Shown here piece by piece: positions 8,525 to 63,999 of a stretch of 64,000 nt of DNA (its first letter is position 1; each line of letters begins with the position of its first letter). The notes below the pieces were generated by a model. It was not told where the DNA came from. It saw only the letters and a list, made by a program, of their open reading frames with translations, and made no database searches. The position numbers and the translations under genes were made by a program. The stretch is from IMG/VR virus record IMGVR_UViG_3300021959_006010, positions 1-64,000 of that record. One strand, written 5' to 3'.

Positions 8525-8528
8525 ATAC
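8521..8528 (+). promoter_or_regulatory. Putative T4-type late promoter (ATAAATAC)
   Basis: ATAAATAC lies just upstream of the 8539 ATG. The same octamer recurs at 13129 and on the minus strand at 59251-59258, and resembles the T4 late consensus TATAAATA. Confidence 0.55.
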
Positions 8529-8538
8529 ACTAGTAGAA

Positions 8539-11246: not shown

Positions 11247-11247
11247 A

Positions 11248-13125: not shown

Positions 13126-13128
13126 CAG

Positions 13129-13136
13129 ATAAATAC
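13129..13136 (+). promoter_or_regulatory. Putative T4-type late promoter (ATAAATAC)
   Basis: In the 40-bp gap before 13166, followed by an SD-like AGGGG. Confidence 0.55.
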
Positions 13137-13165
13137 ATTAAAGCATTTTAGGGGAATACTACGAG

Positions 13166-14653: not shown

Positions 14654-14664
14654 ATATATAAATA
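14649..14664 (+). promoter_or_regulatory. Tandem T4 late promoter consensus (TATAAATA x2)
   Basis: Exact TATAAATATATAAATA overlapping the 14653 stop codon, upstream of 14702. Confidence 0.6.
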
Positions 14665-14701
14665 ACATAAAGTACGTATATTAAACATAGGATGATAAAA
14701 C

Positions 14702-15775
14702 ATGGCAGTCGGTGATACAATTACAGCAGCTAGATACAATGCAATAAGAAATACTCTACGAACGGTATTAGGAACAAATAACACAGGTTCAGACGGATAT
14801 GGACAATACGTTGTTACTACTGCAAAAGCCGACAACGACATTGTTGATCACGTTGACATGTATAGACTATATGTTGATTTAGTAAGAGCTAGGACACACC
14901 AAACAGGTAATCCACCAACTTGGACAAACTCAGATGGATTAGCTGTTCCAACTACTGGTGATATTATTGGTGAGTTTGCTGGTGCAGTGGGTGCTAATCC
15001 AGGAGAGTCAAGTGCCGATGCAACAACTGATTTAGGTGAAGGATATGTTGATTACGAAAGTGCGCAAAGTAACATTTCCGCAGGCGCACAATTAGCAGAT
15101 TCGACACAAATGAGTATAGAAAGCTTAACGTCAAGTGCCCTTACTAACGCATCTTGGAACAATACAATTTCTCATGTAGTAACTATTACATTTGGCGGAT
15201 ATTCGACTACTAATCCTATTGATAGCAGCTCAGAAGCAGTTACTGGTGCAGACCATAGAAGATATTTCTTTAATGCTGGAGGAGAAATCCAGTTTGATGC
15301 TAGTTTAACAGGCGGCACATCAGGAACGTCTGGCACAAAGGACTATGATTGGTCTGTAATGTTATCAAACATGGGAACTATTACTTTTGGTGCAGGAACA
15401 ACAGGATCATCAACTGGATCAGGTACAGGTAGTAACTTGGGTAATTTTGATATGACAACATCTTACCAAACTGTTTATACTAAGACAGGTACCGGTAACT
15501 ATGCTGAAAACGACTACACTATTAGAGCTCGAGCTCCTAGCACAGATTCTTTACAATTTGAAATCACATTCAATGACGATGACACAGGTGACGAACCAAT
15601 TTCTCCACCACCAAGCGGCGGTATTGTAGGCGGTGTTGACGAAAACGTTACAGGATCAACTACTAGCAACGTTGGAATGCTAAGACCCGACGGCGACAAC
15701 CTTACAATTGGCTCATATACATATACAGCCGTTGTAGTTCCAGCACCAACTGCTGCAAATAATTCAAATCTTTAA
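14702..15775 (+). CDS. Virion structural protein (Gly/Thr/Ser-rich)
   Basis: 357-aa acidic, G/T/S-rich ORF (GDTITAARYN, GYGQ, RYFFNAGGEI) ending the structural module. Confidence 0.6.
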   Translation: MAVGDTITAARYNAIRNTLRTVLGTNNTGSDGYGQYVVTTAKADNDIVDHVDMYRLYVDLVRARTHQTGNPPTWTNSDGLAVPTTGDIIGEFAGAVGANPGESSADATTDLGEGYVDYESAQSNISAGAQLADSTQMSIESLTSSALTNASWNNTISHVVTITFGGYSTTNPIDSSSEAVTGADHRRYFFNAGGEIQFDASLTGGTSGTSGTKDYDWSVMLSNMGTITFGAGTTGSSTGSGTGSNLGNFDMTTSYQTVYTKTGTGNYAENDYTIRARAPSTDSLQFEITFNDDDTGDEPISPPPSGGIVGGVDENVTGSTTSNVGMLRPDGDNLTIGSYTYTAVVVPAPTAANNSNL

Positions 15776-50748: not shown

Positions 50749-51437
50749 CATCTATAGCAACGTTTGGGTGTAGTTATACTGAAGGTATAACAGGATCAGA
50801 TTATAATTGGCCAGCTGAACTTGCTATGCTAAACGACAACTTTGAAATTTATAATTGTGCAAAATCAGGAACTAGTGTAGACTATTCTTTACATGTACTC
50901 GAAAATTTTCTAAAAATAAAAACGCCTGATATAGTTTTATTTCAAGTAACAACACCGCATCGTTTTACATATATCACAAACACTGAATCTAATATTTTTG
51001 AAATTAAAAAGCATAGTAAAAACTATTATAAGTTTGATATTAAAGACAACAAAGACTTAGGATTTATAAATGCTGGATCAATGAGTTTAAAAAACAACAT
51101 GCGAAGAGGTTTTACAAATGCTAAGACTGTACAGGAATTTGCTTTACTATATTATAAACTAGTAGGTAAGAATGTTATAGATAAAACTAAATTTAATGCA
51201 TATTTTTCCTACATAAAAAAATTATTAAAAGATATACCGCACTTGATAATAGCACACGATCTTTCAGAAGACGAATGGATTACTTTTAACTTTATCGATT
51301 TTGATATAAGAAAAAGGTTATCCGACCCAATTTTTGAAAGTTATATAATCGACAACGGACGTCACTTATCAAGGGATGGATTAGTTAATGTGGCTAAATT
51401 ATTATTACAAGAGATCGAAGAAAGGAATATGATATGA
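50745..51437 (+). CDS. SGNH/GDSL-like protein
   Basis: TFGCSYTEG, NCAKSGTS and a C-terminal DNGRHLS. Confidence 0.6.
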   Translation: MTSIATFGCSYTEGITGSDYNWPAELAMLNDNFEIYNCAKSGTSVDYSLHVLENFLKIKTPDIVLFQVTTPHRFTYITNTESNIFEIKKHSKNYYKFDIKDNKDLGFINAGSMSLKNNMRRGFTNAKTVQEFALLYYKLVGKNVIDKTKFNAYFSYIKKLLKDIPHLIIAHDLSEDEWITFNFIDFDIRKRLSDPIFESYIIDNGRHLSRDGLVNVAKLLLQEIEERNMI

Positions 51438-52252
51438 CCGATGATGCAATGCCGTTACAACCTAGAGACAGATGGCCACAAGAATTAGATTCTGTAATGC
51501 CTAAATACTTTAGCGAGGCTGAAGCAATTCCTAACTTCTTTACACAAGAAGAATTAGATATGTGTCTTTTTCAGTTGTTCCATAGTTTTACAAAACACAG
51601 ACACTATGGCGGCGGCACTTTTAAACTTGAAAAATTTGACGAATATCCTATTTGGAAATTAGTCTATCCAAGATTAAAAGAACGGTTTGACTGGCTAAGA
51701 GAAGATGACATACTAACAGGCAACGGATACATAACTGCTACAAACTATGCATTACACATGGATAGTTGTAACCCTGTTGCATATTTTGATTACGATCAGT
51801 TAGCTATAAAAAGTTTTATCATTCCTCTTTTTGTATGCCAACCTGCATCAGCACAAGAAAGAGATGCAAGTTTTGTGTTGTTTAAGAATAGATTGCTAGG
51901 ATGGGAGTGTAATTTTAGTAACGGAGGTAGCAACGATGTTAAAATGACTTATCAAAAAAATGTTACTTCGTATGACAATTTGCCTTGGGTAGACGTTAAC
52001 GGAAACCCTATAGATATTGACACATCTAAAATGCATGATAGTACTGCTGAAATTTACGATGACCATTTAAAGCAGTTACCTAAAGAAACTTATTACGGAA
52101 TGCAATTAGAAACAATTGTTCCTTATTCTCCTAAGAGTATCATTTTGTTTGATCCGTATCAGCCACATGTAACTGGTAATAAAGATTGGAGCAAAACAAG
52201 ACTTAAAGGTGGCATACGATTTAATATACAAAGGAAAATAGACAAATTATAA
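51434..52252 (+). CDS. Fe(II)/2-oxoglutarate oxygenase-like protein
   Basis: HxD (LHMD), IIPL and a distal His in LFDPYQPH. Paralogue of 57046. Confidence 0.55.
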   Translation: MTDDAMPLQPRDRWPQELDSVMPKYFSEAEAIPNFFTQEELDMCLFQLFHSFTKHRHYGGGTFKLEKFDEYPIWKLVYPRLKERFDWLREDDILTGNGYITATNYALHMDSCNPVAYFDYDQLAIKSFIIPLFVCQPASAQERDASFVLFKNRLLGWECNFSNGGSNDVKMTYQKNVTSYDNLPWVDVNGNPIDIDTSKMHDSTAEIYDDHLKQLPKETYYGMQLETIVPYSPKSIILFDPYQPHVTGNKDWSKTRLKGGIRFNIQRKIDKL

Positions 52253-52953
52253 TGGGTAAGATATATTCTTATAATTCCGAGTCGATTGAGTTACCTGACT
52301 TAGATGTTGATGTTATAGCATTGTCACTTAGTGGCGGTGCAGATAGTGCGCTATTAGCATTTCTTATAGCTAAAGATATAGTTGAGTCTAATTCTAAAAC
52401 TAAAATTTTGCCTTTTACAAGATACAGACCTTGGCCTGAAGAAGCACCAAGAAACTGGAACGTTACAAGAGCTAAAGATGTAATACAAAAAATAGTTGAA
52501 ATTTTAGAAACAAATGTTTTTCTAGACTTGCATGTAGAATATCCGCAGATTCAAAGGATGATGACTGTTGCAGAAGAACGAGAACACGTAAAAGATTTAC
52601 ATAAAAAACTTGTTGATTTTACTAAAAATCAAGGGTACAAAAGTTGTAAATTTTATTACGGTGTAACATCAAATCCTAGCAAGGAAGTAATGATCGAAAA
52701 TGATTTTTTATATGATTATAGAATCAAAGACAGAGATGTAAAAAATAGACAAAAAAGAGATACTCGTCCTTTTGACTTAGTTGATAAAAAGTTTATTGCA
52801 GAAATTTATAAGTTAGAAAACTTACTAGATACACTTTTTCCTATCACATATTCTTGTGAAGGAGACCATAATTCTACAAAAAATTATTCTGTACACTGTG
52901 AAACGTGCTGGTGGTGCAAAGAAAGATTATGGGCATTTGGGAGACTTATTTAA
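52252..52953 (+). CDS. QueC-like PP-loop ATPase with C-terminal Zn-binding cysteines
   Basis: LSLSGGADSA (PP-loop) and TYSC...HCETCWWCKER. Confidence 0.65.
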   Translation: MGKIYSYNSESIELPDLDVDVIALSLSGGADSALLAFLIAKDIVESNSKTKILPFTRYRPWPEEAPRNWNVTRAKDVIQKIVEILETNVFLDLHVEYPQIQRMMTVAEEREHVKDLHKKLVDFTKNQGYKSCKFYYGVTSNPSKEVMIENDFLYDYRIKDRDVKNRQKRDTRPFDLVDKKFIAEIYKLENLLDTLFPITYSCEGDHNSTKNYSVHCETCWWCKERLWAFGRLI

Positions 52954-54071
52954 TGCCAGAATGTAATATGCTAGAAAATCATATGTGTATTACTGTTAAC
53001 GGAGCATGGCGTCCTTGTTGCCGGTTTAACGAAGATGTGCAACCGTGGAATGAAAGAATGAGAGTAGAAGACTACTCTTTTCAAGAATACCGTAGTAGTA
53101 AATTTTATCAAGAAATAAAGGCAGCACAAAAGACAGGCTGGCACGAAGGCTGCAAGGGTTGCGAAATCGCAGAACAAACAGGCACATCTAGCACTAGACT
53201 TATATTTGGAGAAAAGCTTTCTGGTGTTAAAGATCAAGTAGAATATATAGAAATAAGTTTAAGTGACGAATGTAATCTTGCTTGTAAAATGTGCGGACCG
53301 TGGGCTAGTAGTACATGGAATAAAATTGCTCTCGAAAATACCGAAACATTAGAAGGATTTATTAAACCTCAAAAATTTACTTTTACAGCCGATGTTGAAA
53401 AAGTGTTTAATGATATAGATTTTACACATATTAATTCTGTAAAAATATTAGGAGGAGAGCCCTTTATTGTTCCCGAAACTAAAAAATTTTTAGAGTTATT
53501 AGACAATAACGGAATATTACCAAATGTTAATATTATGACTAATACTAATGTTACATTTTTTCCTAAAAAGCTAGTAAAATATCTTACTAAAGCAAAGACA
53601 CTATCTATTGCAATGAGCTTAGATGGAGTTAACAGAATAAACGATTATATTAGATACAAAAGTGATTGGCAAACTGTTCTTGATGTTATAGCACAGTGGA
53701 AAGAATTTTATAAAAATAGACATGACAAAAATTCTTTAAAATTTGCAAGTGTTATAAATGCCTACAATGTACATCAAGTAACTGAAATGAGAGAGTTTGC
53801 AGAAAGTAATAATATAGAATTACAGTATAATATTATAAACAGTCCGAGATATTTGAGACTTGATGCTCTTCCTTTAACTTATGTAGACGAACTAGCCAAT
53901 AAATACAAAGATACCAAAGACCACGGTGTTTATAGATATTTAAATTCTATAAAATGTAACGAGAAGTACCTCAAAGAATTGAAAGAATATACTGTTCGAA
54001 TGGATAAAATTACAGGTATAAATTTAAAAGATTATAATCTTTCTTTAGCAAAGGCACTTGACATTTTGTAA
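52953..54071 (+). CDS. Radical SAM protein with N-terminal twitch/SPASM-like domain
   Basis: ECNML...GAWRPCC...CKGC, CNLACKMC and LGGEP. TAATG-coupled start at 52953. Confidence 0.9.
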   Translation: MPECNMLENHMCITVNGAWRPCCRFNEDVQPWNERMRVEDYSFQEYRSSKFYQEIKAAQKTGWHEGCKGCEIAEQTGTSSTRLIFGEKLSGVKDQVEYIEISLSDECNLACKMCGPWASSTWNKIALENTETLEGFIKPQKFTFTADVEKVFNDIDFTHINSVKILGGEPFIVPETKKFLELLDNNGILPNVNIMTNTNVTFFPKKLVKYLTKAKTLSIAMSLDGVNRINDYIRYKSDWQTVLDVIAQWKEFYKNRHDKNSLKFASVINAYNVHQVTEMREFAESNNIELQYNIINSPRYLRLDALPLTYVDELANKYKDTKDHGVYRYLNSIKCNEKYLKELKEYTVRMDKITGINLKDYNLSLAKALDIL

Positions 54072-54085
54072 AGATGTGTTATCAT
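54058..54085 (+). promoter_or_regulatory. sigma70 promoter with extended -10
   Basis: TTGACA (54058-54063), 16 nt, TATCAT (54080-54085) preceded by TGn. SD AGGAG before 54108. Confidence 0.7.
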
Positions 54086-54107
54086 ATATGTAACTAGGAG
54101 AAAAACG

Positions 54108-55172
54108 ATGCCAGCTACTCAACAAGAACTGGAGCAATTGAAACAAGATAAAGAATTTATTGTTTCTACAGTAGCAGAATGGGTTAAAGATGTATACCCA
54201 AATAGAACAAACGAACCAGAAAAGTGTGTGCGAGATTTAGGATACATATATGATGCATTTGTTAATACTGTTGAATATATAGATATAAATTATGCACACG
54301 ATATAGCTGCTAAGTTTTGGCATAAGGGTGTAATGCAGTTGGTAGAACCAGAAGTAGAAGTACATACATACGCTCATACTTCTGAACTTATAAAATTGAG
54401 ACATCCTACTTTAGAAAGATTTGCTATATCCTTCTTTAGAGAATTAACAAATGGGTTAAGTAATAAACCTAAATTTAAAGTAGGGAACGAAAGTGATCCT
54501 GAACTTACTAATAAAATACATAACTTAGCTAAAAACAGACATAACTGGAAACCGTTAACCGGAGACAAACCGACACCGGAGCATTTAGAGTTAATATTAG
54601 AAGCAGCAGCAGGTATGACACCAGCTTTGTCAAATGAATATAATTATCGAGTAGACGAAGTTCCTGATTATTTAAAAGAAGAATTGTTTACAGATCTTAT
54701 ACAATGGTCAGATGCAGCCGAAGAGTCTGGTAATACTTTATATGCAAGAGACCAAAACGATCAATTAAAAGCACCTACCTTGTTGTGTTGGTGTTTACGT
54801 TATAATCCAGAAAATGACAGTCACTATCAGTTTTGTGGAGATATGACAGATAGAGATCCAAATTTAATTAATATTGGACTAAGCGTATGGCACACTTGTT
54901 TAACTGCTGAAAGCTTAGGATATAAAACGTCCTTTTGTCAAGTTACAGGATGGAAACGAGACACTGCTAAAGAAATATTAGGATTAACTACTGACGAAGT
55001 TCAATCAGAACACCTTACTAAACGCAATGGACAGTGTGATTTTATGCCTATGATATTTTTAGCTATTGGTACTGAAGGACGAACTAATACCAACACTCGA
55101 GCTTTTAAGTCAGAAGATATTATTAACAAGATGCAATTTAGAGAAGAGAGACTCGTTTCAAATAATGACTGA
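54108..55172 (+). CDS. Fusion of a phycobiliprotein/globin-like domain and a nitroreductase-fold domain
   Basis: N-terminal VYP...EKCVRDLGY...AISFFRELTNGLS. C-terminal NRHNWKP....LELILEAA..TPA..N...APTLL...IG....CLTAESLGY.T...FLAIG. Confidence 0.6.
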   Translation: MPATQQELEQLKQDKEFIVSTVAEWVKDVYPNRTNEPEKCVRDLGYIYDAFVNTVEYIDINYAHDIAAKFWHKGVMQLVEPEVEVHTYAHTSELIKLRHPTLERFAISFFRELTNGLSNKPKFKVGNESDPELTNKIHNLAKNRHNWKPLTGDKPTPEHLELILEAAAGMTPALSNEYNYRVDEVPDYLKEELFTDLIQWSDAAEESGNTLYARDQNDQLKAPTLLCWCLRYNPENDSHYQFCGDMTDRDPNLINIGLSVWHTCLTAESLGYKTSFCQVTGWKRDTAKEILGLTTDEVQSEHLTKRNGQCDFMPMIFLAIGTEGRTNTNTRAFKSEDIINKMQFREERLVSNND

Positions 55173-56286
55173 AGATTTAAAATGGAGCAATTACGATTTT
55201 ACTAAAATACCTTTTGACGATCTTGTCAGTGTCGGCCAACGTACTCTTTTGTATCGTGATATATTTACAGTATCATGGTTACTTGGCCGTTTCTGTAACT
55301 ATCGTTGCTCCTACTGCTGGCCCTACGCCAGAAGCGATCGTAAAGACCACCGTCCTACCGAGCTCTGCTTGCTTACAGTGGATGAAATTAAACGTCAAGC
55401 CCGAGACAACGGCTTCAATTCTTTCCACTTCTCCTTGTCAGGAGGAGAGCCTACTTTCCATCCTGGATACCTCGATATACTAAAGCATTTGGCAAATGAT
55501 GTGCCAAACACAAACTATACAAGCATACACATGACTAGCAATTGCAGTCGTCCTATGAGCTGGTTCGAACAGTATGTTGAACTTGCAAAACCATTCCACA
55601 GAGCAAGTATTACAGCAAGTCTGCACACAGAACATTTAAACACAAAGGAGAAGATGCAGGACTTTGCAGACAAGTTGATCCTGTGTCAAGAACATGATGT
55701 ACAAGTTACAATCAATATGGTTATGGTGCCAGACTGGTTTGAACGTGATTGGGAAAATGCTTTGTTCTTCCATGAGCAAGGTATCAATGTCACCCTTAAG
55801 CCGCAGTCCGACCCTACGGCATCGAGAATCGTTGAAGGATACCGAGAAGAAGACCTAAAGCGTTTGTGGAATGGAATGCCACAACGTGCATACACCGAAA
55901 GCAAACGTAAATGGCAAGGACGTCCTAAACCAACGTATCAAATACCTACAGGAGTAAACGGTAAGTTAGACGCTAGTGTTCCGTGGCATATGCAAGTAGA
56001 ATTTGAAGATAAAGATGGTAAGAAATGGTTTATGGATCAAGCAGAAAGATTTAATGCTTTTAATTTTAATAAATTTAAAGGCTGGAATTGTAACGCTGGC
56101 TACCAAGGAATTATCATACGTGAACCCGACGGCAGTATTAAACGTAGTTACAGTTGTCATGATGTGCCTCTTGGTAATATTGAAACAGGTTTTAAATTAT
56201 TTGACAAACCTATGCCTTGTATAACAGACAGTTGTGTAAGCTCAGCAGATAGCAAAATTCCGAAACGAAAAGAAAGGTTCAATTAA
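55165..56286 (+). CDS. Radical SAM protein with C-terminal twitch-like Cys cluster
   Basis: CNYRCSYC and SGGEP. C-terminal CNAG...PDG.....SC...C...C. The ATG at 55165 is preferred. Confidence 0.9.
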   Translation: MTEDLKWSNYDFTKIPFDDLVSVGQRTLLYRDIFTVSWLLGRFCNYRCSYCWPYARSDRKDHRPTELCLLTVDEIKRQARDNGFNSFHFSLSGGEPTFHPGYLDILKHLANDVPNTNYTSIHMTSNCSRPMSWFEQYVELAKPFHRASITASLHTEHLNTKEKMQDFADKLILCQEHDVQVTINMVMVPDWFERDWENALFFHEQGINVTLKPQSDPTASRIVEGYREEDLKRLWNGMPQRAYTESKRKWQGRPKPTYQIPTGVNGKLDASVPWHMQVEFEDKDGKKWFMDQAERFNAFNFNKFKGWNCNAGYQGIIIREPDGSIKRSYSCHDVPLGNIETGFKLFDKPMPCITDSCVSSADSKIPKRKERFN

Positions 56287-56287
56287 A

Positions 56288-57046
56288 ATGGATTTAAAAA
56301 AGTTTGACAAAAACGGCAATCCTCTTAATCTTACAGAACGAGATTTACGACATTTAAGAGGAAAATATTACGAGTATTGGTTAAAAGATCCTGCTCTTAC
56401 AATGCCGACAGAAGAGCAAGTATTGTGCGAACTTCAATTAACAGCACTAGGAAATTTTGAAGAATTGAATTTTGATTTAGATAGCAATTTATTCCACAAA
56501 GAAATAGAAGCTTACAACGATAAATGGGTGCCATATCTTAGAAGAGAAGGAGTGTCTAATGACAGAGAAGGACTTTTGCTAGTAGGTCTAGAAGGAGATA
56601 CTCCTAGTGATAGTTTGAGTCGCCCTGAAGCAATTAAGCGAGCAGGAAGAAATTTAAACGAAACTGATTTTACGTATCCTACACAAGCATATAAAGATTT
56701 AACTAGCCTGCATCCTATACTAGATTACTGGACAGATCTTGGTAGAACTATGTTGATTCGAACACACGAAGGCGGATGGTTCCCTCCGCATAGAGATCAG
56801 CCGCATTTAAAAAGAGATACTTTTCGGGTCATTATGTTTATTGGTAGAGAAGTGGGTATGAGTTCGTACGAGTGGTTTTTAGGCGACGAACGTCAAGTAA
56901 TTTGTTCAAACAGTGCATATTATGTAGATACTAGAAAAGTACACAGAACACACAGCTGGGAAAGAAATAGCACACATTTGATTTTAAACATTCCTAAAAC
57001 ATGGGAAAATGTAATGAAGTTGATGAGTGTATTACGTCACTTGTAA
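56288..57046 (+). CDS. Fe(II)/2OG oxygenase, aspartyl/asparaginyl beta-hydroxylase-like
   Basis: GGWFPPHRD, YVDTRKVH and HLILN. Confidence 0.6.
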   Translation: MDLKKFDKNGNPLNLTERDLRHLRGKYYEYWLKDPALTMPTEEQVLCELQLTALGNFEELNFDLDSNLFHKEIEAYNDKWVPYLRREGVSNDREGLLLVGLEGDTPSDSLSRPEAIKRAGRNLNETDFTYPTQAYKDLTSLHPILDYWTDLGRTMLIRTHEGGWFPPHRDQPHLKRDTFRVIMFIGREVGMSSYEWFLGDERQVICSNSAYYVDTRKVHRTHSWERNSTHLILNIPKTWENVMKLMSVLRHL

Positions 57047-57732
57047 TGAGAACCAAAGAACAAATAGATAGAATACAATCAACACACGGAAATCCTATTT
57101 CCATAAAAAATATTGTTGATGTAGAACCTCTTAAAAATTATTATAAAGATAATAGTAATAAAATAATACAGAAAAATACAGGTCCTAAAATTTTAGAAGT
57201 TGACCCGAACGAGTTGCTATTCTCTAATTTAATTTATAATATTAAAAGAAGTGTTGGTGAGTTTGAGGTAAGATACATACATTATTTTGATGTTACACAT
57301 CCTCATATTATACACAACGACGATACTTTTGAATACCCTAACTGCTATAAAGCATTTACTATTCCTTTAGAAATTTATGGCGACAGTGATGATATAAAGT
57401 TAGTAGTTTATGATCAATATTATTATGGCGGACCTGCCAAGTTTTTCAACGGAGAAACTAAAAAAGACGGCCAAGTTTATTACAATACACCAATAACTGA
57501 TTATAATGATGTATATGGTGTAAACGAAAATGGAATACCTGAAAACATTAAAAATAATTACTTAACACATTTAAAAGATAATTGGCTTAAAGGGTTAAGT
57601 ATTAATGCCATGCTTGATTGGAAAATAGGCGATGTTTTGTGTTTTGATAGTTTAGCTTTACATTCGTCATCTGACTTTATAAATAAAAATGTATCGAGAA
57701 AAATAGGAATATCTATTTTTACCACATTATAG
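57046..57732 (+). CDS. Fe(II)/2OG oxygenase-like protein
   Basis: IHND, TIPL and WKIGDVLCFDSLALHSS. TAATG-coupled start at 57046. Confidence 0.55.
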   Translation: MRTKEQIDRIQSTHGNPISIKNIVDVEPLKNYYKDNSNKIIQKNTGPKILEVDPNELLFSNLIYNIKRSVGEFEVRYIHYFDVTHPHIIHNDDTFEYPNCYKAFTIPLEIYGDSDDIKLVVYDQYYYGGPAKFFNGETKKDGQVYYNTPITDYNDVYGVNENGIPENIKNNYLTHLKDNWLKGLSINAMLDWKIGDVLCFDSLALHSSSDFINKNVSRKIGISIFTTL

Positions 57733-57740
57733 GATATCTT

Positions 57741-58397
57741 ATGGATTGGCAAGAATTAATTAATAAAAGACATACAACATTTGCATGGGACGATTCAAAA
57801 GTTCCGAGTAGAAGTGTAATAGAAGAAGTATTTGAAGAAGCATATTTACATGTTCCTACAAAAAACTTAATGTATCCATACGAAGCAATAGCATATAGAA
57901 ACGATGATGACGAAATTCGAAAAGAGATAATGACAATATGTCATCGTAACAAAGATATGCCTGTTGAAACAGATCGAGGAAATCCACAAGTGTTAGCACC
58001 TTGGTTAATCGGATTTACTGGAAGATATACACAGGATTTAGAAAAAAGATACGAAAGAAGTTCTTATCGAGAAAGACCTATACAAAGAGACAGTGAGCAA
58101 ATGGAAATTGGAATGTGTGCTATGTTCTTTGCATATGCCTTTGCTAGTAGAGGCATACAAACAGGCTATTGCCAGAATATATTGAATAATCCTCTTAGAG
58201 GAGGAGAAATATTTGGTTTAGAACCTGGTAGGAAATTAAGATTTATAATGGGTGTAGGATACGGAAAAGATAGTGCAACAAGGCACGAATACTACGATCC
58301 GAGAGTAAATCAAAATAAGAGTATTCCTTATACTCCAGATCATGTTGGTGTAATTTATCCGAGACCGGATATAGAAAAGGTATTTAGAGTGCTGTAA
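57741..58397 (+). CDS. Nitroreductase-fold flavoprotein
   Basis: INKRHTTFAW, VPTKN, QVLAPWL, EIG......A...GIQTGYC and MGVGY. Confidence 0.65.
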   Translation: MDWQELINKRHTTFAWDDSKVPSRSVIEEVFEEAYLHVPTKNLMYPYEAIAYRNDDDEIRKEIMTICHRNKDMPVETDRGNPQVLAPWLIGFTGRYTQDLEKRYERSSYRERPIQRDSEQMEIGMCAMFFAYAFASRGIQTGYCQNILNNPLRGGEIFGLEPGRKLRFIMGVGYGKDSATRHEYYDPRVNQNKSIPYTPDHVGVIYPRPDIEKVFRVL

Positions 58398-58407: not shown

Positions 58408-59223
58408 CTAAGCAGCTACTAGTTCTTCTTCTTTGTCCCAGTATTGTTCGTCTGCTTCTAAAATTCCACCTTGACCTGTTACAACTACTACTAGATGTAC
58501 ACGGTCGATGTCGCTGTCATTCTTAACCCAGTGCTCGTACGCTTGATTTAAGAACCACACACTGCCGTCAGCTGGCATATGCTTCTCTACAGTACGTTTT
58601 TTTCCTTTGGTGCCTACAACAACGTCTTCGTGCGTAATTAACGGTATATGTATACGAACTGCTTTATCTGTGTTTATGTCAAGATGTGGTTTAATTTCTT
58701 CTCCTGCTTTAAGCACAGCATATCTTGTACGTGCAACATGGCCTACGTGTTCTTCAATCATGTCAAGAACTTCTGCTACATAACCTTTACAAAACTCGTT
58801 ACGTTTATCATACAATTTTTCGTCTGCAATAGGGGTGTAATCAGGATGGCTTGGGTCTGAAATCTTTTCCATACGTCTTGCAAATTTGCGAGGATCCATT
58901 CCTGTTTCCTCTAGTTTTTTAGCAAGATCTTTATTGTGATCATCTGGATTACCATTAAATTCGGTTAAACACAACATTTTATATGCTTCGCCGCCGTCCG
59001 CAACAAGTTTTCCTTCTCTTTCAGCTTTTTCTTCGTCTGTAAGAAAATATTCAAGAAGCACTCTTCGAACTACAAGTCCATCTTCAGTATTATTGCCGTA
59101 ACTTAATCCGTTATACATATCCCAATTGTCGTAACCCAATTCAAAAAATTCTTTACGCAAGCGATCGATATCTACCTTAAAATTAAGTTTTGCCATTAAT
59201 GGTAAGTGTTGTCTTTTAAGCAT
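58408..59223 (-). CDS. Aspartyl/asparaginyl beta-hydroxylase-like Fe(II)/2OG oxygenase
   Basis: IKPHLD, RIHIPLIT, DGSVWFLN..EHWV.N and RVHLV. Confidence 0.75.
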   Translation of the reverse strand: MLKRQHLPLMAKLNFKVDIDRLRKEFFELGYDNWDMYNGLSYGNNTEDGLVVRRVLLEYFLTDEEKAEREGKLVADGGEAYKMLCLTEFNGNPDDHNKDLAKKLEETGMDPRKFARRMEKISDPSHPDYTPIADEKLYDKRNEFCKGYVAEVLDMIEEHVGHVARTRYAVLKAGEEIKPHLDINTDKAVRIHIPLITHEDVVVGTKGKKRTVEKHMPADGSVWFLNQAYEHWVKNDSDIDRVHLVVVVTGQGGILEADEQYWDKEEELVAA

Positions 59224-59250
59224 GTTTAGTAACCTCTACTCTTTCTATGT

Positions 59251-59258
59251 GTATTTAT
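59251..59258 (-). promoter_or_regulatory. Putative T4-type late promoter (ATAAATAC)
   Basis: The minus strand reads AGATAAATACAC...GAGG...ATG upstream of 59223. Confidence 0.5.
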
Positions 59259-59265
59259 CTATTGG

Positions 59266-59820
59266 TTAATATGTGTGTGTTATTTCTTTAAATTTATGTT
59301 TTGATTCTATCATAAACATAATTGTTTTAGCACATTCTTTCGGATCCATTAATTGTGCTAGTACACGTTGCTGATCAGCAACTGGCCATTCGTCTATTCC
59401 TTGTCGAGCTAGTAAAGTATCAACATACCCTGGATTATACATCATGCTCTTAAATAAAGTTTCGTTATCGCTTATCCAAAAGCTATATGTTTCGAGAGAT
59501 TTTTTAGCAACATTATAATTTAATCTCGATAGAGGTCGACCTTTAAGGACGTCTTTATGCCATGTCCCAACATTAATAACTTTTTTTGAAGTATTAGTCC
59601 AGTTTTTGTGTGCGTACTTTAAGAGTTCTAACTGTCCAGTATAATGATACGCATTGTTAACGAGTACATCGTATTCTAAAACTTGCGAATAAACATCAGG
59701 ATTACTAATATCAAATCCAGTACTTTTACTTCCGCCAGTAACAGTATATCCTTTTTCTTTAGCAAGTTCGTAAATTGCTTTACCTATACCACTTGTGTGT
59801 CCGGTTATAAAAATACGCAT
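59266..59820 (-). CDS. Short-chain dehydrogenase/reductase
   Basis: ITGHTSGIG, LVNNA, YNVAK and PGYVDT. Confidence 0.85.
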   Translation of the reverse strand: MRIFITGHTSGIGKAIYELAKEKGYTVTGGSKSTGFDISNPDVYSQVLEYDVLVNNAYHYTGQLELLKYAHKNWTNTSKKVINVGTWHKDVLKGRPLSRLNYNVAKKSLETYSFWISDNETLFKSMMYNPGYVDTLLARQGIDEWPVADQQRVLAQLMDPKECAKTIMFMIESKHKFKEITHTY

Positions 59821-59830
59821 TAATATACCA

Positions 59831-60619
59831 TTATTTTACAAATGCATGTTTTATGATCCATCCAGTAGGATCAAGTTCGTATGGTCGTACCTTGTAATAG
59901 TACGCACTAGGATTTCCATGATGATTGTTATGTAATGCTTCTCCAAGTAATCCAAAACCAGTTAATGCATTAATAAGAAGACCATTACGTGTGTCATCGT
60001 TAGAATCATAGTTTCGGTATCCTATATTAGGAAATACTCCGTGACCGAATATATTATTAACTCCGAAGTTAAAGCGAATTAAAAATACCGGAATTAAGTA
60101 CGCATTTAATACAAATGTCCATCCGCCTATAATATACCATGCTACACAATATCCTAAAATAACAAACCAATACCAGTCATGCATAAATTTAACTGCTGGA
60201 TTTCTTAATTCTTTAACTACTGCTCGTGGTCGAATACGCTGAAAATGTTCTTTGTCTTGTAAACAAAAGAAACTTCTAAATATTCCGATAGCACTTGGTG
60301 CGATAGGATCGTGTTCGGTGTCGGCGTATGCATGATGTATTCTGTGTATATCTACCCACCATGCAATGCTACCTTGTGTACTTAATGTAGCAGTAAATGC
60401 TAAAAACCAATGACGCAATTTTCCTGTATTGAAGCTTTTATGACCGAAGTATCGATGCATTCCTGCACTACTGCCCATCATTGATACTAAAAATGTCCCA
60501 ATAATAAATGGCCATAATTCAAAGTACTGTGGCTGTAGAATTAAAAAAGGAGCACTTAACCAGCATAAACGCTGTACTCCGGCTAACAACCAAGTTCGAT
60601 GGAATGCTTTAATTGTCAT
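59831..60619 (-). CDS. Membrane-bound fatty-acid (delta-9-like) desaturase family protein
   Basis: Three His boxes (HRYFGH, HRIHH, HNNHH), hydrophobic segments and DPTGW. Confidence 0.85.
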   Translation of the reverse strand: MTIKAFHRTWLLAGVQRLCWLSAPFLILQPQYFELWPFIIGTFLVSMMGSSAGMHRYFGHKSFNTGKLRHWFLAFTATLSTQGSIAWWVDIHRIHHAYADTEHDPIAPSAIGIFRSFFCLQDKEHFQRIRPRAVVKELRNPAVKFMHDWYWFVILGYCVAWYIIGGWTFVLNAYLIPVFLIRFNFGVNNIFGHGVFPNIGYRNYDSNDDTRNGLLINALTGFGLLGEALHNNHHGNPSAYYYKVRPYELDPTGWIIKHAFVK

Positions 60620-61649
60620 TAAAATTCTCTTTCATAAAATTATTTAGCTCGTTGAGTTTGTTAGAATAAATGTCTGCATGTTCTTTTTGGAAATAAGGAT
60701 TATAGTTAGATACTTGAATGTTTTCATAGCCATGTTGTACACGGTATGCCAAACGTCCTTCTACATCACCTAAACGTCGATGGTTAGTAATACTATTATC
60801 AAAGAACAACCAATCGTTATTGTTTTCATACCAATGATCCCACATATAACGTTCAGTCATAAGTTCTTTGTTTAGACGATCAAATAGTGCATTGCTTTCT
60901 TCTTGACTCATGCCTACAATGCCGTCTACTGTATTAATACTATAGTGTAGACCTTTAATGCCGCCTGGGCTTTGTATAACCATAGGCAAATAACTTTCTA
61001 GCTCAGGATTCATATTGATACGCATCATTTCGTCTTGATCGCCTAGGTCTTTAACGTGTAGCATACCTGGCTTATGCCGATGGATGACAATCATATCATC
61101 TAGTTCGCTGCGGAAACTTTCGGAAATATCTTCATAGTAAGTAGCAGTTTGTAAAAATCCTGTACTAGAACCAATCATATTTTCTTGTCCTAATAGTGCA
61201 ACACCGGGTGCAAAAATATGATTGCCCGCCTCGTTACTGTGCCACTTTAGCTCGCCGTCTGGAAAAATACCTGTATAATCTCCACGCTTATCACGAATGT
61301 TTGTTACACGCTGCGTCCCCGAAGGACCTTTAGTTTTAAACCTCTGTTTAATTACATTAATATGTTCGGGTTTAATACTAGGATCGTTTTTAATTGCTTT
61401 ACTAATTACTTCTTTAGCCGGAACTCCAGGATAGTGACTGCAAATATTAAGCATACCACTATAGCGTAAAGGTCCCCATTTTGTGATATACTTAGTTACA
61501 TCTTTTGGAGAAACGTTACAATTACGAATAATTGTAACTAAGTTATCCATATGTATCTTACCAATTTCTAACCATTGGTCGTCGGTCATATTCTCAAAGT
61601 CTACATCGTCGATATAGACAGCATAATTATGTGGGTAAGATATTTTCAT
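60609..61649 (-). CDS. TauD/TfdA-family dioxygenase
   Basis: LKWHSNE, STGF...YEDISE, PMVIQSP and WLFFDN..TNHRR...R..YR. Confidence 0.75.
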   Translation of the reverse strand: MKISYPHNYAVYIDDVDFENMTDDQWLEIGKIHMDNLVTIIRNCNVSPKDVTKYITKWGPLRYSGMLNICSHYPGVPAKEVISKAIKNDPSIKPEHINVIKQRFKTKGPSGTQRVTNIRDKRGDYTGIFPDGELKWHSNEAGNHIFAPGVALLGQENMIGSSTGFLQTATYYEDISESFRSELDDMIVIHRHKPGMLHVKDLGDQDEMMRINMNPELESYLPMVIQSPGGIKGLHYSINTVDGIVGMSQEESNALFDRLNKELMTERYMWDHWYENNNDWLFFDNSITNHRRLGDVEGRLAYRVQHGYENIQVSNYNPYFQKEHADIYSNKLNELNNFMKENFNDN

Positions 61650-62223
61650 AGTTAAAGTCCCTTCGGTTATTGTATATTATGTACTGCCAGCATTCCGGAT
61701 CTGGTGGGTTAGGTGCTACTAAGCACGGTTCGTCTGATACTTTCCATTCTTCGTTAGTATAATTAGTTATCATCTCGGCTAATTGTCGAGTCCTTCTTCC
61801 GGATGTTTTCGTTTCTTCTCTACCGATAAAGAAATCGGTATATCCTAAGTTATTACAAAAATCTATCTGTTGTGTAATATGATCTATTGTATCTAAACGC
61901 ATGCCATCAGTGCCCTTACCAAAATTTTTCATTTTATACTTAGGTACAATGCAGTATCGAGTACACAAACGTATAATACCGTTATACATAGGTCGTGTCC
62001 AAGCTAAAGATGCAAGCACTGGTTCTTCGTCAACTGTTGTCACGGTATAACAAAGTGTATTATTTTTTAAGTTTTCGTCTATAACATAGTTAGGAGATCT
62101 TAACTGATCAGACTTTGCTACTTCTTTAAAAATGTAAATAATTTCTTCAGAAGGAACTTCTGTTGTAAAGGTATTAGAATTACCATCTAGCTTTTCGTAT
62201 AGTTTTAAAGGTTTGAATCTCAT
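61627..62223 (-). CDS. Hypothetical protein, possibly GNAT-fold
   Basis: IRLCTRYCIVPKY and LGY..FFIGRE loosely resemble GNAT motifs A/B. Confidence 0.4.
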   Translation of the reverse strand: MRFKPLKLYEKLDGNSNTFTTEVPSEEIIYIFKEVAKSDQLRSPNYVIDENLKNNTLCYTVTTVDEEPVLASLAWTRPMYNGIIRLCTRYCIVPKYKMKNFGKGTDGMRLDTIDHITQQIDFCNNLGYTDFFIGREETKTSGRRTRQLAEMITNYTNEEWKVSDEPCLVAPNPPDPECWQYIIYNNRRDFNYENILPT

Positions 62224-62936
62224 AATGTAAACTTGTTTGATTTTTGGAATAGTCTTTTTCTTGCTTTCAGTAAAATATTTTCGTCTGCTACTTTTAGTTC
62301 TAACGGAATTTTTTCTTTACGCACTGGTACTAATTGACACAGAGGAGTTCCTGCAGGAATAGTTACACGACCTTTTGTTGTGTGCCAAAACATATGTATA
62401 TTAAAGTCACTTTGAAATCCTTCGCATTTGCCAGGACATGCTGTAAATTTTGGATCGTCATCATAGTAGACAGGAAGGATTTGTAATTCATATCCTTTAG
62501 GAATATCAAAACTATAAGGTATAAACACTTTAAAAATATGATTATGATAATTTCCTGTAGGTATCTTCATTGGACCTTTATTTGTATCAAATGTAGTAAT
62601 TAACGGGTGTTTAAAATCTATAGTATCGAGAAACTCTTTTAGATTAGTTGGATAAAATATTTCAAATTTATCTCCGTCTGTTTCTATTGTAAAGTCATGC
62701 CAAGTAGTAGCTATGTAACCAGATTCCATTACATTACGCACACCTGGACACTTTGCTACACTAATAGTACTTGCTCTGCCGTCTGTGACCTTCTTGTATT
62801 TTTGAAACGCTGTAGCACACTGTTTGACCCATTTACGCTTATAATCGCGAGCCGGGTAAATAGGGTACTCGTCTGTAATAGCAGTTGCTTCGCTATAAAA
62901 TTTAACGCTAGGCTTTTTCAGAAAGGGTATATTCAT
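62220..62936 (-). CDS. Hypothetical protein with dUTPase-like beta-fold signature
   Basis: KCPG....GY, IPKGY and TIPAGTPLCQLVP. The catalytic dUTPase motifs are not evident. Confidence 0.45.
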   Translation of the reverse strand: MNIPFLKKPSVKFYSEATAITDEYPIYPARDYKRKWVKQCATAFQKYKKVTDGRASTISVAKCPGVRNVMESGYIATTWHDFTIETDGDKFEIFYPTNLKEFLDTIDFKHPLITTFDTNKGPMKIPTGNYHNHIFKVFIPYSFDIPKGYELQILPVYYDDDPKFTACPGKCEGFQSDFNIHMFWHTTKGRVTIPAGTPLCQLVPVRKEKIPLELKVADENILLKARKRLFQKSNKFTL

Positions 62937-63999
62937 AATCGTATGCTCTTAGTGATTTTCTAAACGGTGTTAATTTACGTCCTAGTTCGTCTTGTGCTTG
63001 CTCAAAATTTTCTGCAACATACATTAGTTCGTCTGCCCTAAACATTGTATGGAACCAGTAACGTATTGCTCCTGTGCTACGTATTTTACCCTCGACCATT
63101 GCTTCTCGCCAGTGTGTTCGATGTTCTTCCACACGAGCCTTCCAAAATGGCATTTTGTCTAAGTTGTCAAAAAACTCAAGTATTTCGGCACTTGGTTTTA
63201 AAATATCAGTTAACAATTTTGTGTTATTAAATGTATTCATCCACCAAGTATAATCGTACATTGTTAACAGATCTTCTGTGCTAAAACTAAAACAACTGTT
63301 TATAAGATCTTTTCTTACAATATTTGTTTTATCTTGTTTAGTATCAAAATCTTCAAATATTAAATCTCTGTTTCGGTGATAGAATTTATTTGATGTTTGA
63401 TAGATATTATCTCTGTATGCATATGCATGATGTACTTGTAGTTCGTAATCTTCTCTATGGTTTAACAAAAGCGGCATATTAGGAACTGCTTCTAATGCAT
63501 GGAACGCCTGTGTCTCAACACCATGTCCGAAATCTTTGTCTAGTGTGTATAACCAACTTTCAGGTGTTTCTCCCGGAAGACCGAGAATAAGTTCACTGTG
63601 ATAAGGAATGTTATTTTCTTTATAATAGTTGAGAAGATATTCTAGTTGTTCTGTTTTAATATTACTACGGTCATTATATGCAAGAGTTTTCTTACTCCAA
63701 CTTTGAATACCTAATTTTAATGGTGTCCAATGTCCGCTTTCTGCTGCAAAATTATCTTTAAAAAATATTTTACTAATTTCAGGTACATACTTAACACTAT
63801 TTTTAGCAGTGCCGCATAGACTAATAAACACATCATCACGCTTGTGATCACGCATATACTTTGTCATGTCTAGATCACGCTCATACATTCCCCAATTTGC
63901 ATCTATAATTTTAACACCAGTAATTGACTCGCTTTTTAAAAGTTTATCTATAGTCTGATAGTTTACATCGTTGTCATATTTGCTAACAACACTACCTGT
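62908..63999 (-). CDS. B12-type radical SAM protein, 5'-truncated by the window edge
   Basis: The frame is open to the edge (TGSVVSKYD...KIIDANWGMYERD). DANWG, GIQS and ELILGLPGETPESW align with 23064 and 37026. The CxxxCxxC motif would lie outside the window. Confidence 0.75.
   Translation of the reverse strand, partial: TGSVVSKYDNDVNYQTIDKLLKSESITGVKIIDANWGMYERDLDMTKYMRDHKRDDVFISLCGTAKNSVKYVPEISKIFFKDNFAAESGHWTPLKLGIQSWSKKTLAYNDRSNIKTEQLEYLLNYYKENNIPYHSELILGLPGETPESWLYTLDKDFGHGVETQAFHALEAVPNMPLLLNHREDYELQVHHAYAYRDNIYQTSNKFYHRNRDLIFEDFDTKQDKTNIVRKDLINSCFSFSTEDLLTMYDYTWWMNTFNNTKLLTDILKPSAEILEFFDNLDKMPFWKARVEEHRTHWREAMVEGKIRSTGAIRYWFHTMFRADELMYVAENFEQAQDELGRKLTPFRKSLRAYDYEYTLSEKA

Follow-up and report, generated by a model that had tools for sequence, protein, structure and literature searches.

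Bilin-binding globins were thought to be confined to cyanobacterial and algal antennae, to which a few BBAG and photoglobin proteins of bacteria have been added since 2023. In phycobiliproteins, such as allophycocyanin, C-phycocyanin alpha and the bilin-binding domain of the core-membrane linker ApcE, the bilin is attached at Cys84-x-Arg86-Asp87 on helix E of a globin-like core (helices B, E, F', F, G and H), and an N-terminal X/Y helical hairpin makes the alpha/beta monomer. ApcE attaches its bilin without a lyase. The bilin biosynthesis-associated globins (BBAGs) of heterotrophic bacteria are phycobiliprotein paralogues outside photosynthesis, found in genomes that carry a heme oxygenase and an FDBR (Rockwell, Martin and Lagarias 2023, PMC10151467). 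They are stand-alone proteins of unknown function, their genes lie in the same small cluster as HO and FDBR together with V4R and Fe-S proteins, and BBAG-1 and BBAG-3 have a CXRD motif and self-attach bilins. In photoglobins and photocobilins, a short, biliverdin-binding five-helix globin is fused to a B12-binding domain for control of activity (PMC8717448, PMC10979010). The Asp on the E helix is the key bilin contact, but photocobilins have no Cys and bind biliverdin non-covalently in a flipped orientation. The origin of phycobiliproteins is described as unclear (PMC10151467), and the role of the hemO-pcyX cassettes in phages of heterotrophs is stated as unknown, although a BBAG-like acceptor has been suggested (PMC11480375).

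Here, we examined a gene of a jumbo phage in a window of 64,000 nucleotides (positions 1 to 64,000 of IMG/VR record IMGVR_UViG_3300021959_006010; the whole genome is 275 kb). A first-pass annotation made from the sequence alone had described this gene as a phycobiliprotein-like domain with an intact bilin-attachment Cys motif fused to a nitroreductase. The observation was confirmed: the open reading frame starts with ATG and encodes 354 amino acids, the two peptides that had been cited (...VAEWVKDVYPNRTNEPEKCVRDLGYIYDAF... and ...RFAISFFRELTNGLS) are present, and Cys40 lies in EKCVRDLGY. The motif is not a chance hit: all four KC.RD strings found in open frames over 80 amino acids across the six frames of the genome lie in the same homologous module. 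The gene had also been credited with its own sigma70 promoter and a strong Shine-Dalgarno sequence. The latter could be read directly, whereas promoter-like sites in this AT-rich stretch were no more frequent than in shuffled sequences (9 against 9.3), so that the promoter is only a candidate. A second resemblance, of the A.SY.D....ALS-type helix end of phycocyanin alpha to AISFFRELTNGLS, does fall at the end of the last helix in a greedy alignment, but it is not conserved in the family and is probably coincidence. The coordinates of all features are given in Table 1.

Table 1. Features of the fusion gene and its surroundings (positions of the window, except the last row, which refers to the genome record, G000:C1)
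Feature	Position	Strand	Remarks
Tail-fibre module	272-15775		Includes Collar and Peptidase_G2 domains; the enzyme cluster lies directly after it
N-terminal-twitch radical SAM protein, upstream partner	52905..54071	+	NCBIfam NF033640, 213.9 bits against a cut-off of 170
Sigma-70-like promoter candidate	54058..54085	+	TTGACA-16 nt-TATCAT with an upstream TG, 11/12 matches
Shine-Dalgarno AGGAG	54096..54100	+	7 nt before the ATG
Two-domain gene, predicted phycobiliprotein-like globin plus nitroreductase	54108..55172	+	354 aa; full-length AF2 model with pLDDT 86.8
Predicted globin module, aa 1-118	54108..54461	+	Helices 5-13, 15-29, 37-57, 61-68, 81-98 and 100-118; hairpin at 71-76
CXRD motif, K39-C40-V41-R42-D43	54222..54236	+	Near the start of the long helix (E-helix equivalent)
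K39	54222-54224	+	
Cys40	54225-54227	+	Codon tgt
Linker, aa 119-130	54462..54497	+	No secondary structure and lower pLDDT (about 74) in the full-length model
Predicted nitroreductase-fold domain, aa 131-354	54498..55169	+	PF00881 covers aa 142-296
R144-H-N146-W-K148-P-L150	54537..54557	+	R144, N146, K148, P149 and L150 invariant in 22 sequences; counterpart of the RHSTKAF FMN-phosphate motif of NfsB
T171-PALSNEYNYRV-182	54618..54653	+	Most conserved block of the family; P172, L174, S175, N176, E177, Y178, N179, Y180 and R181 invariant
Downstream radical SAM gene	55165..56286	+	Likely true start ATG 55165, overlapping the stop of the fusion gene by 8 nt (ATGACTGA); PF04055, 59 bits
Second, single-domain nitroreductase of the cluster, a distant paralogue	57741..58397	+	PF00881, 26 bits; 24% identity over 147 aa, E 4e-5
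hemO and ferredoxin-dependent bilin reductase	G000:C1:178492-179702		Adjacent genes, about 124 kb from the fusion gene

The N-terminal domain was predicted by AlphaFold with high confidence (pLDDT 93, pTM 0.86). A fold that is not globin-like had been named in advance as grounds for rejecting the assignment, and the structural comparisons gave the opposite outcome. VIA-align ranked six bilin-binding phycobiliproteins first (Z 13.4-12.1, rmsd 1.9-2.7 Å), the best being allophycocyanin 8or7_A (Z 13.4, rmsd 2.1 Å over 115 residues, with model residues 1-118 on chain residues 33-159); the closest phycobiliproteins had Z 13.4-13.0 and rmsd of about 2 Å with 111-123 of 128 residues aligned. Photocobilin followed at Z 11.9 (TM 0.66), whereas sensor globins scored about 11 and haemoglobins about 8. 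Foldseek against PDB, Swiss-Prot and AFDB clusters gave the same ranking, with ApcE 4xxi, photocobilin 8j2x and phycocyanins as top hits (TM by query 0.66-0.70). It should be noted that the Foldseek E-values are weak (0.05 and above) and that helical models can reach a Z of about 13 by arrangement alone. The domain is a phycobiliprotein-type globin core of helices B to H that lacks the X/Y hairpin and so any basis for alpha/beta pairing: the model begins at the residue equivalent to about 33 of the phycobiliprotein chains and no residues precede it in the open reading frame. In addition, the B-E loop is about 11 residues shorter, and a beta-hairpin replaces part of the F'/F region. A haem-binding sensor globin that regulates the flavoenzyme, as in globin-coupled sensors or flavohaemoglobin, was also considered, since such globins appear among the fold matches at Z 7-11. 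However, phycobiliproteins, ApcE and photocobilin rank above all haem globins and no histidine is conserved across the family, in which the nearly invariant residues are C, R, D, D and D; haem binding was therefore rejected as very unlikely.

At the sequence level, a deep profile built from 113 units of the family, in which C, R and D are nearly invariant, returned 9 phycobiliproteins among 11 hits in PDB sequences, with K39, C40, R42 and D43 aligned to K83-C84-A-R86-D87 of CpcA. The same register was obtained by hhalign against 103 CpcA sequences (probability 91.7%), and K-C-x-R-D-[IL]-G-Y sits at the equivalent place in the long E helix, followed by a GG turn in the family consensus. A residue-level superposition of Cys40 on Cys84 was not made. 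This signal is essentially the motif alone: with the six motif columns masked, the hhalign probability fell to 0.6%, the level of the reversed control. Homology with phycobiliproteins therefore rests on fold plus motif and not on overall sequence. No match to the phycobilisome family PF00502 could be detected in the protein at E<=1 or in the whole genome at E<=10, whereas the control search in Synechococcus elongatus was positive. Pfam and PHROG scans of the N-terminal domain found nothing, two shallower profiles against PDB sequences gave only noise, and the ESM Atlas model of the protein is poor (pLDDT 0.58) and its neighbours are meaningless. These results, together with the weak E-values, could suggest a generic helical bundle that happens to contain KC.RD. 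We consider this very unlikely, because all fold libraries rank bilin-binding globins first, the whole domain is covered at an rmsd of about 2 Å, the structural alignment starts in the same register as the sequence alignment (model residue 1 on chain residue 33, query residue 7 on residue 40), and the motif is conserved across more than 900 units.

The first-pass annotation had cautioned that similar segments occur as repeats in some phage virion proteins, so that the domain could instead be a targeting module. This caveat is also correct and is not an alternative, as the segments are the same domain. A profile of the N-terminal domains of the orthologues found 652 representatives (392 at E<=1e-10), mostly giant proteins with up to 33 units, which in named phages are cyanophage tail-fibre or baseplate proteins. 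The similarity extends over the whole unit of ∼115 residues, including L..NK.FI, KC.RD.G, DA...DL and the aromatic W/Y, and C.RD is kept in 934 of 969 units (96%). Three tail-fibre or virion proteins of this genome carry the module (E 1e-26 to 1e-31), and hhalign to the unit in its 1300-aa virion protein gave a probability of 97% (E 2.8e-11). In giant tail-fibre, baseplate gp7 and virion structural proteins of T4-like cyanophages (for example S-PM2p091 and P-HM2 gp7), the module was found with profile E-values of 1e-22 to 1e-28 and with BFVD models of TM up to 0.80. There it is repeated within multi-thousand-residue structural proteins with no enzyme domain. A Pfam scan of the repeat proteins found nothing relevant, and no published description of the module as globin-like or phycobiliprotein-like was found in the literature searched. 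Stand-alone versions of 102-132 amino acids could not be upheld, since at least one of them is a fragment of a 358-aa fusion protein. Thus, in addition to the BBAG and photoglobin proteins, our data show a third, large branch that is phage-borne and comprises several hundred sequence clusters, of which most are repeats in giant tail-fibre and baseplate proteins and one lineage is fused to a flavoenzyme. Even if the modules bind nothing, the fold of a very common, unannotated module of cyanophage structural proteins can now be named.

On the other hand, examination of the fusion proteins argued against an obligatory chromophore. Twenty-one full-length metagenomic homologues (35-58% identity) were collected, whereas only one relative of the fusion gene was found in IMG/VR and tblastn of the whole protein against named phages found no match. 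Absence of the Cys from homologues had been specified beforehand as evidence against the assignment, and this is partly the case: among the 22 orthologues the motif is kept in 15 (whole in 14, partly in 1), while the remaining 7 have lost Cys, Arg and Asp together, yet keep the domain and the same position in the radical-SAM cluster. The core role of the domain therefore cannot depend on canonical bilin attachment. One possible explanation, which we consider only slightly less probable than our preferred one, is that the module carries no chromophore and is a structural or docking module that associates with the same module in the giant tail-fibre proteins or otherwise scaffolds the enzyme. 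This would target the nitroreductase, and with it the radical-SAM tailoring machinery, to virion proteins or incorporate it into the particle, with CXRD as an inherited feature with a structural role. Consistent with this, the module otherwise occurs only in virion proteins, the enzyme cluster lies directly after a tail-fibre module, and P31 and W71, rather than the Cys, are the nearly invariant residues in all orthologues. However, 96% conservation of a lone Cys with Arg and Asp in extracellular repeat units is hard to explain structurally, and the all-or-none loss of the three residues suggests one functional site. Moreover, phycobiliproteins pair through the X/Y hairpin, which this module lacks, so that homotypic docking has no precedent, and the genome makes bilins but has no other obvious acceptor (no PF00502, and no psbA that would point to a host antenna).

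The bilin supply of the phage was then examined. The genome encodes a heme oxygenase (Heme_oxygenase, 57 bits) and a ferredoxin-dependent bilin reductase (Fe_bilin_red, 62 bits) in adjacent genes, which share the genome but not a cluster with the fusion gene. The fusion protein corresponds to BBAG-1 and BBAG-3 in predicted fold and CXRD motif; no profile comparison with BBAG-1, -2, -3 or slr0149 sequences and no rooted globin phylogeny was made. Among 50 fragmentary IMG/VR contigs with a 66-84% identical reductase, 23 also carry the module, as do 15 of 19 contigs of at least 60 kb; co-occurrence with the bilin genes was not examined for two metagenomic loci of the family (L003 and L005). However, a strict link between bilin genes and the module was ruled out, because Pelagibacter phage Mosig has the cassette without the module and P-SSM2, which encodes pebS and ho1, also lacks it. 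No CpeT-type lyase was found in the genome. Binding of a bilin, covalent or not and with or without a lyase, was neither assayed nor modelled here.

The C-terminal domain is real but divergent as a nitroreductase (10-20% identity). Its Pfam PF00881 score lay on either side of the cut-off of 23.5 bits, with 22.6 bits for the protein and 24.6 bits in the six-frame search, so that the profile score by itself does not decide membership. Foldseek gave a probability of 1.0 (E 3.5e-6, TM by target 0.6-0.7) to IYD, BluB and NfsA/NfrA-type structures, which supports the alpha+beta nitroreductase fold. R144, N146 and K148 correspond to the R-x-S/N-x-K/R motif near the start of the domain that contacts the FMN phosphate in NfsB. 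No NCBIfam subfamily, BluB included, matched either this protein or the second nitroreductase of the cluster, so neither is a recognizable BluB. In contrast to NfsB, NfsA, iodotyrosine deiodinase and BluB, the protein has a globin extension of 130 amino acids; its substrate is unknown, and flavin content, activity and formation of a homodimer with bound FMN were not examined.

With regard to gene context, a radical SAM gene of 371-388 amino acids (355 in one locus, L230) lies directly upstream of the fusion gene in all five contexts seen, and the 8-nt overlap with the downstream radical SAM gene also occurs in L003. The window holds at least 16 radical SAM genes, many with SPASM or twitch domains of the kind used by peptide maturases, and an Asp/Arg hydroxylase and a TauD-type oxygenase lie nearby. 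It is conceivable, although unlikely, that the globin domain is itself a substrate or carrier, whose Cys, or a ligand held on it, is modified by the adjacent twitch/SPASM radical SAM enzymes (thioether-type chemistry) with the flavin domain completing the reaction; the virion repeats would then be the physiological targets of the same enzymes. However, orthologues without the Cys sit in the same cluster, the sugar-nucleotide enzymes and a glycosyltransferase also present fit a glycan or small-molecule product, cyanophages with many modules are not known to carry such clusters, and there is no direct evidence for this possibility.

Taken together, the analysis itself shows a two-domain protein that joins a predicted phycobiliprotein-type globin core, with CXRD at the position of the bilin-attachment motif of phycobiliproteins and BBAG-1/3 globins, to a predicted nitroreductase-fold domain; that the former is one copy of a module that otherwise occurs as one to about 33 repeats in giant phage virion proteins; and that the gene lies in a very large radical-SAM tailoring cluster next to tail-fibre genes, in a genome with a bilin cassette. 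The remainder of our interpretation is inference: the module was recruited from the virion proteins onto the flavoenzyme and binds, probably covalently through Cys40, the bilin made by the phage's own cassette, and bilin occupancy, or its light or redox state, then gates or positions the FMN domain, which would carry out an NAD(P)H-dependent reduction or an FMN-dependent dehydrogenation in the cluster's pathway, working with the neighbouring radical SAM enzymes. We give this reading a probability of about 0.4. The fold and family assignment are firm, bilin binding is possible but unproven, and the coupling to catalysis is a guess. The earlier interpretation, that a chromophore- or redox-sensing globin-fold domain regulates a flavoenzyme that possibly supplies electrons to the radical SAM enzymes in a light- or O2-dependent way, is thus only partly supported. 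Its structural part holds, whereas regulation by light or O2 and electron supply to radical SAM enzymes are untested and inference only; the sole relevant facts are the constant adjacency to an N-twitch radical SAM gene and the 8-nt overlap with the next one.

If the modules bind bilins, they would be the missing acceptor for the bilins that many marine phages synthesize, they would be a concrete candidate for the light sensor behind light-dependent cyanophage adsorption, and they would bear on the origin of phycobiliproteins. A more speculative and, at present, unlikely possibility is that the CXRD globin module is a bilin-binding chromophore domain carried on phage particles. In this view, the repeats in tail-fibre and baseplate proteins would make the virion itself a photoreceptor, which would explain the long-known but unexplained light-dependent adsorption of some cyanomyoviruses, the hemO-pcyX cassettes of marine phages whose hosts may make no phycobilins would gain a purpose, and the nitroreductase fusion would be an enzyme put under the control of the same chromophore. 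S-PM2, P-HM2 and P-HM1, which show light-dependent adsorption (PMC6628666), carry 9, 4 and 4 modules, respectively, whereas P-SSM2, P-SSP7 and P-GSP1, which adsorb in the dark (PMC6628666), carry none. This is six of six phages, but only about three independent contrasts. The jumbo-phage clade studied here keeps both the bilin cassette and the module. Although modules of this kind are found in T4-like cyanophages, the idea that the present phage, whose host was not identified, is itself a T4-like cyanophage was rejected: no psbA was found, its helicase is closest (55%) to those of the jumbo phages PA5oct and Atu_ph07 and it has topoisomerase II.

The 354-aa open reading frame and the peptides that the first-pass annotation had read in it, including a Cys at position 40, were all recovered from the sequence, and the observation on this gene is confirmed. 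An AGGAG lies 7 nt before the ATG. A good -35/-10 pair could also be identified upstream; however, such sites are no commoner here than in shuffled sequence, and the promoter that had been proposed is only a candidate. Twenty-one full-length metagenomic homologues (35-58% identity, 327-363 aa), plus one truncated, showed that the two-domain architecture is conserved. For the C-terminal domain, the Pfam Nitroreductase profile matched aa 142-296 at a borderline score (22.6 bits against a cut-off of 23.5), with 24.6 bits in a six-frame search, so that the profile score by itself gave no clear decision. The full-length AlphaFold model was confident (pLDDT 86.8), and Foldseek matched it at probability 1.0 to iodotyrosine deiodinase, BluB, NfsA/NfrA and many putative nitroreductases. 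The invariant columns of the family lie in this domain, namely R144-H-N146-W-K148-P-L and then TPALSNEYNYRV, the first of which mirrors the RHSTKAF flavin-phosphate motif of Escherichia coli NfsB. No NCBIfam subfamily, BluB included, claimed the domain. A second, single-domain nitroreductase in the window is a distant paralogue.

For the N-terminal domain, initial searches of sequence libraries gave no match. We built a profile from the N-terminal domains of the orthologues and searched it against 1.84 billion representative sequences, which returned 652 proteins, 392 of them at E<=1e-10. Most of these are giant proteins of 1,000-6,400 aa with up to 33 matched stretches. An alignment of 113 units (hereafter A3) was then used to predict the structure of aa 1-128, giving six helices and a short hairpin (pLDDT 93, pTM 0.86). 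Whether the predicted fold would be globin-like had been set in advance as a test of the proposal, and the comparison came out in its favour. VIA-align against 48,161 PDB representatives ranked far-red allophycocyanin first (Z 13.4, rmsd 2.1 Å over 115 residues, model 1-118 on chain 33-159), followed by another allophycocyanin, the ApcE bilin-binding domain (13.2), three ApcE chains in phycobilisome cores, photocobilin (11.9) and two phycoerythrins, whereas RsbR-type and sensor globins followed at about 11 and haemoglobins at about 8. Foldseek against PDB, Swiss-Prot models and AFDB clusters gave the same order, with weak E-values but probability 1.0. On the basis of this predicted structure, the domain is therefore the B-to-H core of a phycobiliprotein without the X/Y hairpin.

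The position of the Cys motif was examined separately. The A3 profile searched against all PDB sequences returned 11 hits at E<=10, nine of which are phycobiliproteins; the best was CpcA (E 0.02), with the C.RD of the profile on K-C84-A-R-D of CpcA. A comparison by hhalign with 103 distinct CpcA sequences collected from cyanobacterial genomes gave a probability of 91.7% (E 7.7e-7) in the same register, with Cys40 on Cys84 and query residue 7 on residue 40, which agrees with the structural offset. It should be noted that masking the six motif columns dropped the probability to 0.6%, the level of a reversed template. Thus, the claim of kinship rests on two separate facts, the fold and the same motif at the same place in that fold, and not on diffuse sequence similarity.

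Conservation of the Cys among homologues, a second point on which the proposal had been expected to stand or fall, was found only in part. Among 22 orthologues, 14 have the full C-x-R-D, one has C-x-H-D and seven have lost all three residues; four of these seven have no Cys in the domain at all. The CXRD-less genes occupy the same place in the same gene cluster. In the wider family the triad is nearly invariant, being present in 934 of 969 units, and the nearly invariant columns are C40, R42, D43, D49 and D54. The all-or-none loss suggests that the three residues form one site, whereas the persistence of the domain without them shows that it also has a role that does not need this site. The CXRD-less orthologues favour the main alternative to a bilin-binding domain, namely that the module is a chromophore-free docking or scaffold domain.

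The first-pass annotation had also cautioned that similar segments occur as repeats in phage virion proteins. This is true, and these segments are the same module. The genome, an IMG/VR virus record of 275,366 bp (about 77% complete, 37% GC), has three further copies, in two tail-fibre proteins and one virion structural protein. Each of these proteins has one clear copy, and the 2,637-aa protein also has a degenerate second one. Among 50,697 named phage records, a repeat protein of the family matched 193, all of which are Synechococcus or Prochlorococcus phages or marine single-cell viruses, and the matched genes are annotated as tail fibre, short tail fibre, gp7 baseplate wedge or virion structural protein. 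BFVD models of those proteins matched the domain at TM up to 0.80. No paper describing this module or calling it globin-like was found in the literature library searched.

We also examined whether bilins could be supplied by the phage itself. The genome encodes adjacent heme oxygenase and PcyA/PcyX-like ferredoxin-dependent bilin reductase genes outside the window, and the reductase is 53% identical to that of Pelagibacter phage Mosig. ClpS-like and Hsp20-like ORFs, named from inspection of their translations and not by a profile scan, lie next to them. No phycobilisome protein, CpeT lyase or psbA was found in the genome. In IMG/VR, 215 contigs carry a reductase 66-84% identical to this one. 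Of 50 that were searched, 23 also carry the module in giant ORFs, including 15 of 19 contigs of at least 60 kb and 8 of 31 shorter ones. An abundant jumbo-phage clade therefore keeps both features, although this represents one lineage and not independent co-occurrence. Counter-examples also exist: Mosig has the cassette and no module, with a positive control in the same search, and P-SSM2 has no module. BBAG globins with a CXRD motif, which are phycobiliprotein paralogues in heterotrophs, self-attach bilins (PMC10151467). The purpose of hemO-pcyX in phages is stated as open, with a BBAG-like acceptor named as "one possibility" (PMC11480375), and photocobilins show a bilin-binding globin controlling a fused domain (PMC10979010).

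Analysis of the gene context showed that the window starts with a tail-fibre module, whose 2,750-aa ORF does not contain the globin module. An exceptionally dense enzyme cluster follows from about 16 to 64 kb, with at least 16 radical SAM genes, several of which have the SPASM or twitch domain at the N-terminus, before the radical SAM core, and two of which have B12-binding domains. The cluster also holds an NAD epimerase, a UDP-glucose dehydrogenase, a glycosyltransferase, Asp/Arg-hydroxylase and TauD oxygenases, a fatty-acid desaturase, an SDR and the two nitroreductases. Its order is conserved in related metagenomic contigs, and its product is not known. In all five contexts examined, the fusion gene directly follows a radical SAM gene of 371-388 aa (355 aa in the locus L230), which in this window matches NF033640, the N-twitch family. 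Two proteins of about 270 and 235 aa always precede the N-twitch gene; neither has a family assignment, the second having only a faint QueC/PP-loop-like hit. Here and in the related locus L003, the next radical SAM gene overlaps the stop of the fusion gene by 8 nt, which suggests translational coupling. The annotated TTG start of this downstream gene is probably too far upstream, because its homologues are 370-373 aa. It is followed by two conserved proteins of about 250 aa, also without family assignment. The phage itself is a marine jumbo myovirus whose host is not known, and is neither a T4-like cyanophage nor a member of Kyanoviridae: its replicative helicase is closest to (55% identical to) those of the jumbo phages PA5oct and Atu_ph07.

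Positions of the fusion gene and of the other features described (G000:C1 is the whole virus record)
Sequence	Position	Strand	Feature
Window	272-15775	+	Tail-fibre module: 2,750-aa ORF, 697-aa protein with a phage tail Collar domain, 495-aa protein with a Peptidase_G2 intramolecular-chaperone domain
Window	16169-58397 and 58408-63888	+ and -	Tailoring cluster
Window	Starts at 19402, 23064, 27263, 29376, 31416, 33528, 34694, 37026, 44622, 45710, 47008, 48417, 49504, 52905, 55066/55165 and 62908	- for 62908	Radical SAM genes of the cluster (at least 16)
Window	51434-52252, 52252-52953, 56288-57732		Conserved cluster genes with no family assignment
Window	54058-54085		Promoter candidate, TTGACA-16-TATCAT with TG
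Window	54108-55172	+	Fusion gene
Window	54225-54227		tgt codon of Cys40
Window	55165-55172		Overlap of the fusion gene stop and the probable ATG of the next radical SAM gene, ATGACTGA; TTG start of the ORF list at 55066
Window	57741-58397		Single-domain nitroreductase
G000:C1	128606-136519	-	2,637-aa tail-fibre protein, module at aa 847-966
G000:C1	140574-148970	+	2,798-aa tail-fibre protein, module at aa 575-688
G000:C1	232246-233658 and 150450-153567	-	Replicative helicase; two-subunit topoisomerase II, DNA ligase and class I RNR genes
G000:C1	178492-179702 (locus L010, 1489-2714)	-	Heme oxygenase (178 aa) and bilin reductase (230 aa)
G000:C1	265920-269822	-	1,300-aa virion structural protein, module at aa 24-180
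S-PM2, NC_006820	about 55.5-58 kb and 166-170 kb		Globin modules
P-HM2, NC_015284, and P-HM1, NC_015280	gp7 at about 54.5-57.5 kb and an ORF at about 83 kb		Globin modules

Taken together, the interpretation offered by the first-pass annotation is partly supported: the fold, the motif and the nitroreductase hold, whereas the Cys is not universal, and regulation of the flavoenzyme and electron supply to the radical SAM enzymes are untested. The domain architecture, the predicted fold, the motif, the family membership, the gene context and the presence of bilin genes in the genome are established by the present data. Beyond these, we infer that the module was recruited from virion proteins, that in this phage it binds the phage-made bilin at Cys40, and that it gates or positions an FMN-dependent redox step that works with the neighbouring radical SAM enzymes. 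The phycobiliprotein-type fold is considered very likely, but bilin binding by this protein is tentative (a probability of about 0.4). What differs from the bilin-binding globins described so far is the setting, a phage gene in which a phycobiliprotein-type globin is joined to a nitroreductase.

A wider relationship might exist with the adsorption of cyanophages. Some cyanomyoviruses adsorb only in the light. Whole-record searches with A3 found no module in P-SSM2, P-SSP7 or P-GSP1, which adsorb in the dark. Presence of the module matches the published phenotype in six of six phages checked, but these represent only about three independent contrasts, and the relationship is a hypothesis and not a finding. 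The same searches identified 9 modules in S-PM2, 4 in P-HM2 and 4 in P-HM1, all of which have light-dependent adsorption.
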